Source: Adineta vaga (lineage: Eukaryota > Animalia > Rotifera). Taken from it: DNA of 64,000 nt. Location of the stretch: positions 8,370,001 through 8,434,000 of the forward strand of contig CP075495.1 of the NCBI GenBank assembly GCA_021613535.1, written 5' to 3'. The position numbers and the translations under genes were made by a program. Shown in pieces: positions 31,921 to 37,897 of the stretch; the first letter of the stretch is position 1, and each line of letters opens with the position of its first letter. The notes beneath the pieces were generated by a model that saw only the letters and a program-made list of their open reading frames with translations, made no database searches and was not told where the DNA came from.

Positions 31921-32035
31921 ATATATCTTTTATTTTGTTTTAAAAACGGAAAATATAATCGAAAAAAACGAATATTCGAAATAAAAAAAAAGTATGCAAA
32001 AAACGAATAAAACTCTCAGTTTAATGTACATTCAT

Positions 32036-35000
32036 TTATGATGAACGAGGTGCCCATGATCCGAAAACTTTTGGTGGTGTTGCTTCTATGAAGATCAAAT
32101 AGAAATTTTTAAATTATGATTATCAAAAAAACCTACGAAATGTTTTTCGTTGTTCTGTGATGGGTTGTTGACTAAATTGGTTATTGTTATTGAATTGAGT
32201 ATGGTCAACTGTTTGAAATGATGTTTGTCCAGGGAAATTTTGGGCTACAAGTCCTGAACAAGAAAAGATATCACACACCGATTTTACATAGTTTTACAAT
32301 ACCTTGGTTAACACCTTTATTGGTTGATGGTATGGTTGTTGCTGTTGTTTCAAAATTATTACCAACTATTTGTCCTAAGGAAATAATAATTGAGAGATAG
32401 ACGGTAAGAGATTGTGTATATTTACCGTTTTGTGGTCGAAATTGAGTTTGAGTAGATAGAGGTGCACGATCGGTAAAATCTTGAGTTGATTGAAGTTTTG
32501 GATCAGAAGAATCAATGAATTTAGCGTCTTTAAATGGGAAATAGTTTGTTTCATTTTAAAAGCTACATGTAGAAGTTTACCTAAAACTCGATGATTTGGC
32601 CATGTTCGTGATTGTCCGAAAGTATTAGAAGTTGATGTTTCTAAAATAACAAGTAGGTGTCGATCAAATAAACATCTAGTTTCAATACGAAACCTTTTTG
32701 TTGTTGTTGTTGAGGAAATGCAAACTGTGTATTTTGTGTTTGAAACGAAGTATCGGTGTTCAATGATTGTTGATCTAAATATTATAATGAGATAAGTGAT
32801 TGGAATTGAGATGTATTCATTTACCTTGTGATAAGCGAGATTGAGATGAAAATGTTTTCTCTTGTTTTGGTGTTTCTATATTCAAAACAAAATAGATCTA
32901 TAGTAATATCGAAGAGAAAAAGCTTACCTGACCATTGTGTTGGTTTGAAAGCAAATACTTGACTTGTTTGAGTTTTCACTGGTTGTTCTATAAAAAATTC
33001 TTTGATTAAAAAAGATAAACATTTCAATCAATGGATTACTTGTGAATTTATTTTCCCATGATTGTTCTTGTTCTTGAAAGTTTTGTAAAGGAACAACTTT
33101 TTGTGGTCGTGTTGTTGTTTCAACGAATTTGCCTTGATTTTGACCTAAAATTAGTTCAAAGAATCGTTAAAATAATGTTTTAGAAAAATAAAACCAAACT
33201 TTACTTTGGAATCGATTTTGCCATGGTTGTTCTTGACCTTGAAAGCTTTGTGAGGGAACAACCTTTTGTGATTTCATCACTGTATCGACAACAGTTGGTT
33301 GGTTTTGAGCTAAAGGAAAAGGTTAATTTAACGTTTTGGTAAAGTAAAGCCAAATTTTACTTTGAAATCGATTTTCCCATGATTGTTCTTGATCTTGAAA
33401 ATCTTGTGAAAGAATGACCTTTTGTGGTTTCGCTCCTGTTTCAACCAATGTTTCTTGATTTTGAGCTAAAATCAGTTGTAAAACGTGACTGCATTCACTG
33501 TTGAATATTAAAGCTTACTTTGAAATTGTTGTGGATTTCCTAAGGTTTGTTTTTCTATGCATCATATAAAAAATACTTCAAATCAAGGAAGAAAGAAGTA
33601 AAAAAATTTACCTTGCCAAGTTTGTGGTTGTGTAGTAAATCGTTGATTAGTTTTTTGAAATCCTATTTTCAAAACAAAAAGAATTTAACAAAATTTCATC
33701 AGAAATATTTCTACCGGTATTGAAACGATTTCCATTATCAATAGATGTGACTTCGCGAAGATTTGATCCTGCTTGTTCTTCAGTTTGGAATAGCTGATTA
33801 TCTGATTCTGATAGAAGAAAGAATAGTAACGCATGGTTTTATTAGAGAGATTATACTTTGCCATGTTTGTGGTTGTGTAGCCATATTATTTGATCGTTGT
33901 TGCCACGATTGTTCTTGATCTTGAAAATTTTTATTCCGAAAATCTAAAGACAAATATTTGATGATCATGAGATCAAGCTAAAGGATCAAGACAAACCTTG
34001 TAAACGGATCATATTTTGTGTTGGTTTATCTGTTTCAATCATTTTTTTTTCGGAAAAGTCTAAACAAATCAGATAGAATGAAAATTTAACAGAAGAATTA
34101 TGAATTAACAATGGTACCTTGTGTTTGTGGTCGATTTTGAAAAGCTAATAGATTAAAATACAAAAATCATTAATGATAGTACCAAGAAAACCTTTACTTT
34201 GTGATGTTTGTGCGAATTGATTTGGTCTGATTTGCCGGGTTTGTTCATGTTCAAAGGAATTTTGCTTTTGAAATCCTAAATGTTTAAGAAAAAAAAGTGA
34301 AGAAGAAATGAATAAAATGAGCGACAAACCTTGTAAATTGTGTGTGTTTTGAGGAGTTTTTGAGAAACTACGGAATGCATTTTGATTGTCTTCTAAGAAT
34401 ATTCATTCTGTTAGATTACAATGTTCGATTTCCAAAAAGAAATATACCTGGAAAGTGTTCTTGATTTTGAACAGTTTGTGAGGCTATGATTTTAATGAAA
34501 TTAATAGAAATATAGATGAGAAACACAAATACTTACTTCGTTGCAATTGTGGTTGTACAGCAAAACGTTGATTATTTTGTGTATTACCATCTTGTAATTG
34601 ATCTAATATCAAATATTTCTCATATTATATAACTCAATTTAAATCATTATTTACCTATCCATTGTTTTGTACCAAAAGCTTGATTTTTTTGTTGAAAATC
34701 TATAAGAAGATAAGTTACATTATTGATTAATGAATAAAGAAAAGACATACTTTGTTGTGGTTGATTTTCATGTTCATGTTCAGATTCTGATTCATCCATA
34801 TTCGATTGAAGAAATGATCGTTCTGTAGAAGATGGTGTCCATTTCTGTTGAGCTACAAAGAAGAAAATAAGTGCATTGTTTCACTGAACATCTATATCAT
34901 ATCTAGTAAATTGCATAGAATCAACTGTATGTATCGCGTCAAAGGAATGATTTATCATGCAAGTTAATATCAATACATACTGTTTTGCTTTGTAAATTGA

Positions 35001-36715
35001 GTTTGGTCGGATTGTCTGTGACCATTGTTAGTTGGTACAACTGAAATATTGAAAATAGTAGATTTTTTCTTGGATTAAGATGAAAGAAAGGTTTACATTG
35101 CCATTTTTTAGGTACAGTTAATGAATCTTGACGGATTTGATTGCTATCGGTGATGGATGGTAATTGAGCTAAGCAAATAAGAATCAATTTAGACATTCAA
35201 TCACTTGCTAAGAATAATGAAAATTTACTTATGAATTCTTGATTTTTTTGTTCTTTTTCATGTAAATTTTGATTTGAAACTCCTAGATAATCAAAACTAA
35301 TGAATGATATTTTCTAGAAGATTTGTTACCTTGTTGATTATTCATATTTGCTAATAATTGTTGTCGATTTGCTACACGAGCTGGAACAAAACTAAGAAAA
35401 CCATCTTTATCTTGTTTATTATCTTGAGTCAATGGTCTAAAATCATAAATAATGAAAAATCTTTCTTGAACAATTTATTTTTATATACTTTTCTCGTTCG
35501 ATTTGCATGCGTGTTTTTACAACCATTTCTTCCTTGTCACTGTTGTCAACGGTCTGTTCTTGATTTGAATTTTTAGTATTATCTGATGATACTTTTGTCA
35601 AAAAAGCCGGTAAATCGATTTTTGCTGGTCGTTTACGATCACAAATTTTCTCTTCTTGACTCCAATAGAGTAATGGACCACATGGTTGAAAATAGATCAA
35701 TTCACCATCACATTGAATATATGCATGTTGACTGAATGCAAACGGATAAAATTGTTCAGTTGTTGTTAAACATGGATTTGGCACAGCTATTTAAAAAAAA
35801 GTTTTTTCGATATATGCATGAATTTGTTTTCTGTAAAAAAACCAACCTTCTCGACAATTGAGACCATAACCTTTCAATGTATGACATACACAAACATAAT
35901 CTTGTTCATAATCATTTGTTGCCAATGGTCGACATTCAGCATTTGGACCGCAAGGTTTGTTCACACAGGAATTCATTGGTGTTTCACATCGATCACCAGT
36001 CCAATCTGGACGACAAGTACATTTAAATGTTGAATTTGATAATACGGAACAAACACCCTCATTTAAACATGGTTTAAGTGTTTCACATCTATTTACTAAT
36101 GGTATAGTAGCAGAAACATCACATGCATTGGTTTGTTCATTAAATTCAACACCATCTGGACATGTTAAGATTTCATAATGAAATTCATCGCGACAGAAAA
36201 TATATTTCGTTTTATCTTTGGAATAAGCAATTTTTGATGATGGTTGAGAACCACCACAGGGTGATGGTACTACAAAGAAATCACTTAGTAATTATTTAGA
36301 AAAACAAATTCGATACTAACATGGTTGAACATTTGATGTATCAGCGGATTTTTGGTTTGATCGTGGAATTTCGCTAAAAATCAAAAAAATATATGAAGTA
36401 AATTTATCAAGTTAGTATATACCTATTATCTGATGCTATTAATTCTTCGGTTTTGCCGTCTTCCAAAATCCGAAGTTTACCGAAAGGATAACCTTTTTCT
36501 ATGTTATCTGCATTGTTATCATCTATGAACATAAAGGCAAAGGTTATATTCATAAGAAACTTGTTAAATAATACGAACTATTATCATTGGTTTGTCCATG
36601 CACACCAAAGGCAATAAGTAGAACTAAGATAAAACTTAGTGAACGCTATAAAATGTAACCATAAAGTTTTGAAATAAAAACATTCTATAGGGAAAAATGT
36701 CATTTAACTAACCAT
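32036..36715 (-). CDS. Secreted protein: signal peptide, chitin-binding type 2 (CBM14)-like domain, 2 EGF domains, second CBM14-like domain, then a long Q/N/F/T-rich tail; about 34 exons
   Basis: Coding part of exon 1 is ATG only, giving MRSLSFILVLLIAFGVHG. Domains: KYIFC...TCPDGVEFNEQTNACD; PCLNEGVC...FKCTCRPDWTGDRCE; AYIQC...QPCGPLLYWSQEEKICD. A chain of phase-1 exons runs to ...GSWAPRSS*. Confidence 0.85.
33040..33465 (-). repeat. Three tandemly duplicated 105-nt exons
   Basis: 33465-33361, 33309-33205 and 33144-33040 each encode QNQxxxV(E/D)TxxxxQKVxxxQxFQxQEQxWxNxF. Confidence 0.85.
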
Positions 36716-37897
36716 TCGTATAATCACGCAAAAGATTGTTTGTTAAGATCAAAACAAGATAGTCTTCGAATAGTCGATAAAATGAACACGAAACTAGTCG
36801 AATCATTCTTCTTATAGTTTCGAAGAACAGAGACTATAGATGAAGAAAGAACTACCTCGATTGTTATTGTTCACAATGATTCTAATATATTCATTTCATA
36901 CGAACACATAACAAATGACATATAGATTTCTAGAACATCATCTCGTCTGAACAGAAAAAGAAAATCAAATGTTATATTGGTGTACTGTCAGAGGAGTGAA
37001 ATATCGTTTCTTTCGTGAAATTAATAGTAAATGCACTTCTCACCAGTGACACCTATATATCGTTGACTATAGAAACTAGTAGATTTTAGAAAAACTTTTA
37101 TGAAACGGATTGTTGTTATACATACATATGATTTCATTGTAATATTTAACAAATATACAATTATTTCGTGTGAAAATAGTATATAAAAATATCTATTATG
37201 AAAGAAATAGCGATACAGTACTGCAAGTGAATGAAATGATCTAAATATATGGAAATGTAATGGAAATCAACTTGGGAATTTTCAACATTGATCTAACCTG
37301 ACTGATGGTATATGACTTGTGTTGTTGTATTCTTTGTGGAGGTTGTGGGTGGGTAAGGGTGAGGATGACAATAAGAAGAACACCCTCACCCTCAAACTGT
37401 ACGTACTACTAGATGATACCACCATTCAGGGGTCCCTTAATATTGTTAAAGTACTTGTGAAAATTTTACACGAACACAATTTTTGTCAATTGTCGAAAGT
37501 CAACACGGCGAAATTCTTGTTTTCCGAACAGATAACGACGAATAATTAAATGATTAATCTTTCGTCTGATATTCTTTTTTTCTTTTTTTCTCCTTTCAAG
37601 CAATAGTACTTCATTCTGATTCATCTTTTCATATGTATACATATACGATTTATGTTGATTTTTGACATATGAAACTATTTCACGCGTGTATAGAAATATG
37701 TCATCAATAACTTTTCTGCTCGTCTTCATTCTAAACATGATTTTAAAGACCTTGTCCCTATGTATCGTTCGATTTTCATTTCGAATAATTATGCAGTCAA
37801 CCGGAACATTAACTCTTCTTTTTCTTCTTTTCTGTTCAATCGTATTTTATATCTATAACAAACATTAACTAACCGATATTAAATACACAAAACTCCA

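Follow-up and report, generated by a model that had tools for sequence, protein, structure and literature searches.

In this study, we have analyzed a 64,000-nucleotide stretch of the genome of the bdelloid rotifer Adineta vaga (GenBank assembly GCA_021613535.1, contig CP075495.1, positions 8,370,001 to 8,434,000 of the forward strand), referred to here as the window, and one minus-strand gene within it, I4U23_008371. The gene probably encodes a constitutively spliced, secreted matrix protein of a chitin-containing structure, with a disordered tail that grew by duplication of exons flanked on both sides by phase-1 introns. We document its gene structure, expression, splice junctions, domain content, pattern of conservation and differences in exon number between species, and we suggest from them secretion (judged by eye), chitin binding, disorder, a tissue and a role for the tail.

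Gene model, tail array and head domains

The window is AT-rich (GC content, ~0.30), and the region under study has the form of a minus-strand eukaryotic gene with very short introns. Our model, built by dynamic programming with a reward for good splice sites, runs from position 36715 to position 32036 (ATG, 36715-36713; TAA, 32038-32036) in 33 exons (Table 1), and its coding sequence of 2892 nt yields a product of 963 amino acids. An earlier dynamic-programming model that rewarded coding length ran through introns and was replaced; the present model matches every joint in the RNA contigs described below, and a protein search found its product to be identical, residue for residue, to the NCBI entry "hypothetical protein I4U23_008371 [Adineta vaga]." The gene is therefore already annotated, yet it is uncharacterized and unstudied: no paper was found under its locus tag or its probable FUN number, nor did the literature yield any work on proteomes of rotifer jaws or egg shells. 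Intron 1 (36646-36712; 67 nt, phase 0) directly follows an exon consisting of the start codon alone and is based on the model and the NCBI protein. The RNA contigs end at position 36643, beside a heterozygous site at 36644, and do not reach exon 1.

The tail of the protein (exons 7 to 33) comprises 648 amino acids. Exons 8 to 32 are 25 consecutive phase 1-1 exons of 27 to 117 nt (median, 63 nt), each a multiple of three in length, and each of the 26 introns numbered 7 to 32 is in phase 1; they measure 47 to 60 nt, except for intron 10 (128 nt). The typical frequency of phase-1 introns is ~0.3. A succession of 26 is far beyond chance, though the exons are related by duplication and are not independent of each other. 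A preliminary description of this locus, made from the sequence alone, had delimited an array of about 28 small symmetric exons at 32036-35436, an interval bounded exactly by the stop codon and the first base of exon 7; it contains 27 exons, of which 25 are symmetric. The same description had assigned phase 1 to every readable junction and a multiple of three to every exon length counted. The former is correct within this interval, intron 6, just before it, being in phase 2, and the latter is true of all 25 exons from 8 to 32, with exon 7 (107 nt) passing from phase 2 to phase 1.

Glutamine dominates the tail (Q, 20.0%; T, 10.8%; N, 9.2%; S, 7.9%; F, 7.4%; P, 5.5%; W, 1.8%), and Q, N, T and S together make up 48% of it; there is no cysteine, as had been noted for this Q/N/T/S-rich region, and no tyrosine. 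Long threonine runs and the long Pro/Thr/Ser-rich stretches of a mucin are absent. The phenylalanine and tryptophan residues had been described as regularly spaced, which is only loosely true: the coefficient of variation of aromatic spacing was 0.66, compared to 0.93 +/- 0.11 in shuffled sequences, 0.08% of which had a value as low. The conserved cores of the tail are Trp-Gln motifs ([ST]WQ and KQW), often located at exon ends, and in 14 of 26 tail exons a glutamine stands right before the split codon at the exon end.

Exons 23 to 25 share 58 to 66% amino acid identity and 73 to 79% nucleotide identity, and a search of the A. vaga genome with exon 23 matched only these three exons; shorter motifs are common to exons 12, 13, 19, 21, 28 and 32. 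A recent duplication of whole exon-intron units is not shown, the introns that flank the 105-nt exons being 0.60 to 0.68 alike, compared to 0.61 +/- 0.08 for unrelated introns. No usable relative of the tail was found in Pfam (searched with single exons and with the whole tail), in the PDB sequences or in an ESM Atlas feature search. An AlphaFold2 model of four orthologues, which was of low confidence and was used only to look for secondary structure in the tail, placed strands and helices solely in residues 1 to 265 and none in the remaining 700.

The head consists of a putative signal peptide followed by domains in the order CBM14-EGF-EGF-CBM14, and its two large exons account for 721 nt of coding sequence. 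In a whole-protein Pfam scan, CBM_14 (PF01607) matched two stretches with 32.5 bits (cutoff, 22.1). The first EGF domain (PF00008) scored 24.6 bits for exon 5 alone and 21.0 bits in the whole-protein scan (cutoff, 21.5), whereas the second EGF-like stretch, which has six cysteines, gave only matches below the cutoff (Pvs28 EGF, E = 0.017; EGF_3, two stretches). The head contains 20 cysteines, including six for each CBM14 domain, and all of them are invariant in four orthologues. The preliminary description had proposed this domain order and a secreted product; Pfam bore out the former, apart from the subthreshold second EGF-like stretch, and a hydrophobic N terminus that by eye resembles a signal peptide supports the latter.

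Transcription and splicing of the array

Assembled contigs from three RNA-like runs (X1, X5 and X11, from three studies) and from a DNA run (X8) were aligned on positions 31950-36750; contigs, which drop rare variants, were examined and not raw reads. The RNA contigs contained 30 joints, with CT..AC ends on the plus strand that correspond to GT..AG on the minus strand, and the joints displayed coincide with model introns 2 to 9, 16, 25 to 27 and 29 to 31. The contigs of DNA run X8 had no joints. Thirty model introns (2 to 31) are within reach of the contigs; the last, intron 32, lies outside it and is based on the model and the NCBI annotation. Intron 10 is visible only as loose ends that continue into exon 11, and joint 35039/35097 represents the second allele of intron 9. 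The 30 joints therefore correspond to 29 model introns plus one allelic duplicate, and none is left for exon skipping: no exon-skipping joint was present among the 30 in the contigs of the three RNA runs, in which rare isoforms are invisible.

A single unbranched X5 contig of 1621 nt starts at position 32144 and crosses 21 junctions. Its length is exactly accounted for by part of exon 32 (110 nt), the whole of exons 11 to 31, part of exon 10 (20 nt) and an additional codon, and record positions 182, 540, 643 and 750 of the contig fit the same arithmetic. The contig stops one base short of a heterozygous site at 35001, the start of an allelic bubble (35001-35107) at which two allelic contigs of equal depth split the assembly; abundant variants therefore do break these contigs. 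The dominant transcript holds every tail exon. In X5, the depth of the tail contig was 33.5, compared to 43.6 for the head. The word shares of the RNA-like runs were 0.34 to 0.38 and those of the DNA runs 0.78 to 0.81; the expected share is ~0.40 for head and tail exons and ~0.20 for the head alone, and X1 and X11 (0.36 to 0.38) fit head plus tail. Transcription through the array, as proposed in the preliminary description, is thus borne out by the 1621-nt contig and the junctions. The proposal that the array is splice tunable, or combinatorial, is not supported, since the contigs from three RNA studies show a single constitutive isoform, an outcome which that description itself had named as speaking against it.

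The extra codon falls within record positions 284 to 540 of the X5 contig; its likeliest place is a CAA run (32692-32719) at the end of exon 28, where reads are seemingly cut; an additional poly-Gln codon would be a one-codon length allele or a strain difference. At positions 34941-35336, the DNA run X8 gave two haplotype contigs that differ by ~5% (10 differences in 197 nt and 5 in 124 nt). Both haplotypes were present in the RNA contigs of X1, X5 and X11 at near-equal depth, and therefore both alleles are expressed.

Conservation among rotifers

Full-length orthologues, retrieved by an exhaustive search of representative sequences with the head and by cluster look-ups, were found in Adineta ricciae (875 and 881 amino acids; CAF0737184.1/A0A813NKV8 and CAF1587606.1) and Adineta steineri (951 amino acids; CAF3993687.1/A0A819NCR7), all of them labeled "unnamed" or "uncharacterized." They have the same head and a tail of phase-1 mini-exons, and they differ from the A. 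vaga gene in exon number, unit number and tail sequence. When the annotated proteins were mapped exactly on their loci, the orthologues had 32, 30 and 30 exons, compared to 33 in A. vaga. The first six exons are the same, including the ATG-only exon, and all tail introns are in phase 1, the one exception being a pair of very small exons in A. ricciae that is itself doubtful. Tail introns occupy an identical alignment column in the same phase in 22 of 26 cases in A. ricciae and in 16 of 26 in A. steineri. The 105-nt unit, present as three tandem exons in A. vaga, is represented by two units in A. ricciae (one of 132 or 123 nt and one of 105 nt), and in A. steineri a unit of this type is split into two exons by an additional phase-1 intron.

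The head and the tail have evolved at different rates. Head identity is 85% with A. ricciae and 71% with A. steineri, compared to 43% and 38% for the tail. In the two unsaturated comparisons, the ratio of nonsynonymous to synonymous substitution rates (dN/dS, or omega; Nei-Gojobori) was 0.12 for the head and 0.46 to 0.59 for the tail; values against A. steineri were erratic, with a dS below that of the closer species, and were not used. Across four orthologues, 16.5% of tail residues are invariant, including 8 of 12 tryptophans (odds ratio, 10.8; P = 1e-4) and 32% of glutamines, with phenylalanine at the background level.

A metagenomic search with exon 5 returned open reading frame fragments of 64 to 72% identity. 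The metagenome scaffold KANT15-1 (ENA ERZ28594250; L016, 8975-11212), from a bdelloid, carries a gene that we regard as an orthologue because its neighbors are those of the window in the same order (an RSE1/CPSF_A gene, a GST_C gene, two unnamed genes, an ankyrin gene and a kinase). By model only, its tail is predicted to be entirely in phase 1, with units of ~60 amino acids, long threonine runs of mucin-like character and SWQ ends; most units occupy one exon each, and one exon of 456 nt holds several units without introns. Threonine runs are brief in the A. ricciae and A. steineri tails. A 100-nt length difference between L016 and L018 was considered as an exon-number polymorphism and proved to be a scaffold gap of Ns. 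In Rotaria sp. Silwood2 (GCA_905330535.1; L024, 6001-8077), exons 1 to 6 of the syntenic orthologue are the same, and a short lysine-rich end follows them. The mini-exon array is absent: no glutamine-rich open stretch occurs in the ~870 nt before the next gene, and with only that distance available, no array is hidden there.

The A. vaga genome contains four paralogues with the CBM14-EGF-EGF-CBM14 block, for which we used only stretches that had been checked by eye or were bounded at a stop codon, discarding models that ran on into neighboring genes. The closest of them, on chromosome 5, sits at the expected ohnologue position. Paralogues are also present in Didymodactylos and Rotaria. Around I4U23_008371, the gene order at positions 23984-44902 of the window is kinase, ankyrin gene, unnamed gene, I4U23_008371, unnamed gene, GST_C gene and RSE1/CPSF_A gene; this order is kept on the metagenomic bdelloid scaffold and largely kept in Rotaria.

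Table 1. Coding exons of I4U23_008371 (window positions) and paralogues in the A. vaga genome
Feature	Position	Strand	Basis or remark
Exon 1 (coding part), ATG only	36713..36715	-	Model, identical to NCBI protein; annotations in A. ricciae, A. steineri and Rotaria begin with the same 3-nt coding exon
Exon 2, putative signal peptide (hydrophobic core, small residues before Gln19; by eye)	36579..36645	-	Model; joint 36522/36579 in three RNA runs
Exon 3, conserved N-terminal segment with EKGYPFG..LR motif, no Pfam match	36423..36522	-	Model; joints 36522/36579, 36373/36423
Exon 4, short linker	36321..36373	-	Model; joints 36373/36423, 36269/36321
Exon 5, 423 nt, phase 1-1, CBM14, EGF and second EGF-like domain	35847..36269	-	Pfam; RNA joints
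Exon 6, second CBM14, conserved CDRKR, acidic/polar linker	35489..35786	-	Pfam; joints 35786/35847, 35436/35489
Exon 7, 107 nt, phase 2 to 1, tail start, conserved F.PAR.A.R.Q.L motif	35330..35436	-	Model; RNA joints
Exon 8, 54 nt, phase 1-1	35229..35282	-	Model; joints 35281/35329 (cut +1), 35168/35229
Exon 9, 72 nt, phase 1-1, KKWQ at end	35097..35168	-	Model; joints 35168/35229, 35040/35097
Exon 10, 60 nt, phase 1-1, followed by the sole long intron (128 nt)	34981..35040	-	Model; loose ends at 34981 in X1, X5 and X11 continue into exon 11
Exon 11, 102 nt, phase 1-1, acidic/His stretch	34751..34852	-	Model; NCBI protein; length arithmetic places it inside the 1621-nt X5 contig
Exon 12, 45 nt, phase 1-1 (..AFGTKQW.), conserved in three species	34655..34699	-	Model; orthologue comparison
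Exon 13, 66 nt, phase 1-1	34537..34602	-	Model; orthologue exon structures
Exon 14, 36 nt, phase 1-1	34448..34483	-	Model; NCBI protein
Exon 15, 63 nt, phase 1-1	34330..34392	-	Model; orthologue exon structures
Exon 16, 78 nt, phase 1-1	34198..34275	-	Model; joint 34142/34198 in X5, with synonymous allele
Exon 17, 27 nt, phase 1-1, smallest; 27-nt orthologue in A. ricciae	34118..34144	-	Model; orthologue structures; RNA
Exon 18, 63 nt, phase 1-1	33997..34059	-	Model; NCBI protein
Exon 19, 87 nt, phase 1-1 (EQSWQ ... QPQTWQ), motifs common with exons 21 and 23-25	33857..33943	-	Model
Exon 20, 93 nt, phase 1-1	33715..33807	-	Model; orthologue exon structures
Exon 21, 51 nt, phase 1-1 (..QPQTWQ)	33612..33662	-	Model; exon motif comparison; orthologue structures
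Exon 22, 36 nt, phase 1-1	33519..33554	-	Model; orthologue exon structures
Exon 23, 105 nt, phase 1-1, first of three tandem duplicates	33361..33465	-	Model; X5 contig piece 33361-33465
Exon 24, 105 nt, phase 1-1, second tandem duplicate	33205..33309	-	Model; RNA; own-genome matches
Exon 25, 105 nt, phase 1-1, third tandem duplicate	33040..33144	-	Model; RNA; own-genome matches
Exon 26, 60 nt, phase 1-1 (..AFKPTQW.), conserved in three species	32928..32987	-	Model; joints 32987/33040, 32875/32928
Exon 27, 51 nt, phase 1-1	32825..32875	-	Model; joints 32875/32928, 32774/32825
Exon 28, 81 nt, phase 1-1, poly-Gln run at end	32694..32774	-	Model; joint 32774/32825
Exon 29, 60 nt, phase 1-1	32581..32640	-	Model; joint 32527/32581
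Exon 30, 102 nt, phase 1-1	32426..32527	-	Model; contig piece 32425-32527 with joints
Exon 31, 72 nt, phase 1-1	32303..32374	-	Model; joints 32373/32425, 32252/32302 (both cut +1)
Exon 32, 117 nt, phase 1-1, largest of array	32137..32253	-	Model; X5 contig begins at 32144
Exon 33, last 16 codons and TAA, no hydrophobic C terminus	32036..32085	-	Model; NCBI protein
Paralogue L012, probable ohnologue, short tail of eight phase-1 mini-exons	C5:10019000-10028000		Closest paralogue
Paralogue L013, Gln/Tyr-rich repeat tail, one to three large exons	C5:6558000-6567000
Paralogue L014, Gln/Tyr-rich repeat tail, one to three large exons	C2:13352500-13362499
Paralogue L015, Gln/Tyr-rich repeat tail, one to three large exons	C6:1748500-1757500

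A probable matrix protein built exon by exon, and the alternatives

We propose that the folded, cysteine-rich head most likely docks the protein on chitin, a substance that rotifers are known to have in their jaws (trophi) and egg shell. The Trp/Gln tail could then lie along the polysaccharide, or be linked to neighboring molecules, via aromatic and amide contacts, and would form a space-filling or binding phase of the matrix. CBM14 domains are combined with long unstructured regions in insect peritrophins, invertebrate intestinal mucins, cuticular proteins analogous to peritrophins and the Caenorhabditis elegans eggshell proteins CPG-1 and CPG-2. Like the A. vaga product, these are secreted and pair CBM14 domains with an extended polar stretch of low complexity, which fills or coats the chitin matrix; however, their unstructured parts are Pro/Thr/Ser mucin regions or bear glycosaminoglycans, whereas the A. 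vaga tail is rich in glutamine with phenylalanine and tryptophan, and two EGF domains between the CBM14 domains are atypical of these families. The array itself is probably the record of repeated tandem duplication, and occasional splitting, of a unit flanked by phase-1 introns, a flanking by virtue of which every copy is in frame; extracellular modules classically belong to phase class 1-1. Its same-phase consecutive exons, lack of predicted structure and similarity between neighboring exons are those of the symmetric-exon disordered modules. In the human genome, mostly disordered regions are preferentially built from symmetric exons, often via internal tandem duplication (Schad, Kalmar and Tompa 2013, PMC3632108). 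The architecture described in that study is the same, and the A. vaga case is lineage specific, with introns of ~53 nt.

Each of exons 8 to 32 could be skipped without a frameshift, and it can be envisioned that skipping of these cassettes generates many isoforms of different tail length, set by hydration, drying or infection. Two known systems bear on this idea. In tropoelastin-type genes, all exons share one phase and are cassette-like, and alternative splicing is documented; in schistosome micro-exon genes (MEGs), exons mostly of 6 to 36 nt make up the bulk of a small protein, and variation by exon skipping has been shown. The A. vaga gene resembles the former as a long disordered extracellular polymer encoded by many short same-phase exons related by duplication and the latter in its secreted product and its symmetric exons between a signal peptide exon and a terminal exon. 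However, it has neither the alternation of hydrophobic and Lys/Ala cross-linking exons nor any sequence similarity to tropoelastin. Only 3 of its 25 array exons (exons 14, 17 and 22; median of all, 63 nt) are <=36 nt, unlike the majority in MEGs, and the protein is large with a folded head; no alternative splicing was seen in comparison with tropoelastin, and no skipping in contigs in comparison with MEGs. The skipping hypothesis gains from the fact that contigs drop rare variants. Against it stand the lack of a skipping joint in three studies, the unbranched course of the 1621-nt contig next to an allelic bubble that did break contigs and the one-to-one conservation of individual exons across species, and we consider it unlikely; because all exons are included together in the RNA seen, the array is not an isoform device. 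A related idea is that the Trp-Gln mini-exon units are a matrix module of the Adineta lineage, the number of which is tuned both between species and, by tissue- or state-specific skipping hidden from bulk contigs, within the animal. The between-species half, exon gain and loss, is shown here; the complete proposition is doubtful to the same degree as the skipping hypothesis.

Other explanations concern the tail as such. Its evolution ~4-fold faster than that of the head, the differences in exon number among species and the potential of chitin-binding domains to bind fungal walls could suggest an immune recognition protein, the tail of which varies to escape or match pathogens such as fungi. 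This is very improbable, given that the tail omega is not >1, that the Trp-Gln motifs and most intron positions are conserved, that the gene is single copy apart from one ohnologue, with no expanded family of near-identical members, and that the local difference between haplotypes of only ~5% includes no visible difference in exon number. The preliminary description had raised a variable surface protein facing pathogens, for which we likewise found no support: the product has no hydrophobic end of the membrane or glycosylphosphatidylinositol type, and its exons are one-to-one orthologous within Adineta. A near-neutral low-complexity tail, extended when exon units slipped during replication or recombination and of little intrinsic function, has a somewhat better, though still small, chance of being correct. 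The tailless syntenic gene of Rotaria, the much shorter tail of the chromosome 5 ohnologue and the low tail identity within the genus are in its favor; the persistence, in at least four genomes, of an open frame across 648 codons and 26 splice junctions, an omega of <1 with strong tryptophan conservation and a tail depth in X5 similar to that of the head argue against it. Finally, the protein might be a precursor that is cut at a dibasic site after the second CBM14 domain, leaving the head on chitin and releasing the tail as a soluble component of a lubricant, glue or coat, or the reverse. The sequence CDRKR (C264-R268; window positions 35629-35643, minus strand) directly follows the last cysteine of that domain; C264-D-R-K-R-P269 is invariant in four Adineta orthologues, and CDRKR is kept in the metagenomic and Rotaria orthologues. 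However, the site has no arginine at P4 and has proline (serine in Rotaria) at P1', a poor context for furin, and CDR is part of the domain itself and is kept in paralogues without KR. Cleavage of this kind has a low probability, on a par with regulated skipping.

Several observations nevertheless weigh against a constitutively spliced, chitin-bound matrix protein with a disordered tail. When scanned exon by exon, the CBM_14 domains barely exceed the cutoff (23.5 bits for exon 5 and 22.2 bits for exon 6), and CDRKR could be a convertase site that releases the tail from its chitin anchor. The tail is dispensable in at least one lineage, as the array-free Rotaria gene indicates. The four-sequence AlphaFold2 model had a mean predicted local distance difference test score (pLDDT) of 31, so that the term "disordered" is based chiefly on composition. 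No tail contig of X1 or X11 was aligned (32036-34980), and inclusion of all exons was therefore seen directly in one run only; the missing contigs may reflect the behavior of the aligner on many short exons, or a filter. Rare isoforms are, moreover, beyond what contigs can show, and both the tissue and the function assigned to the tail are conjecture.

In conclusion, the style of gene building seen here is a known one and involves no new mechanism, and combinatorial splicing is unsupported; if the unit number were tuned both between species and within the animal, the gene would be a rotifer counterpart of the cassette-spliced structural polymers. I4U23_008371 illustrates cleanly, with RNA backing, how a long disordered extracellular tail is assembled one exon at a time in a single intron phase; its array is stable within the genus and differs between species in unit number, and a sister genus lacks it. 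The gene is also a concrete, as yet unstudied candidate for a component of a rotifer chitin structure, the jaws or the egg shell.

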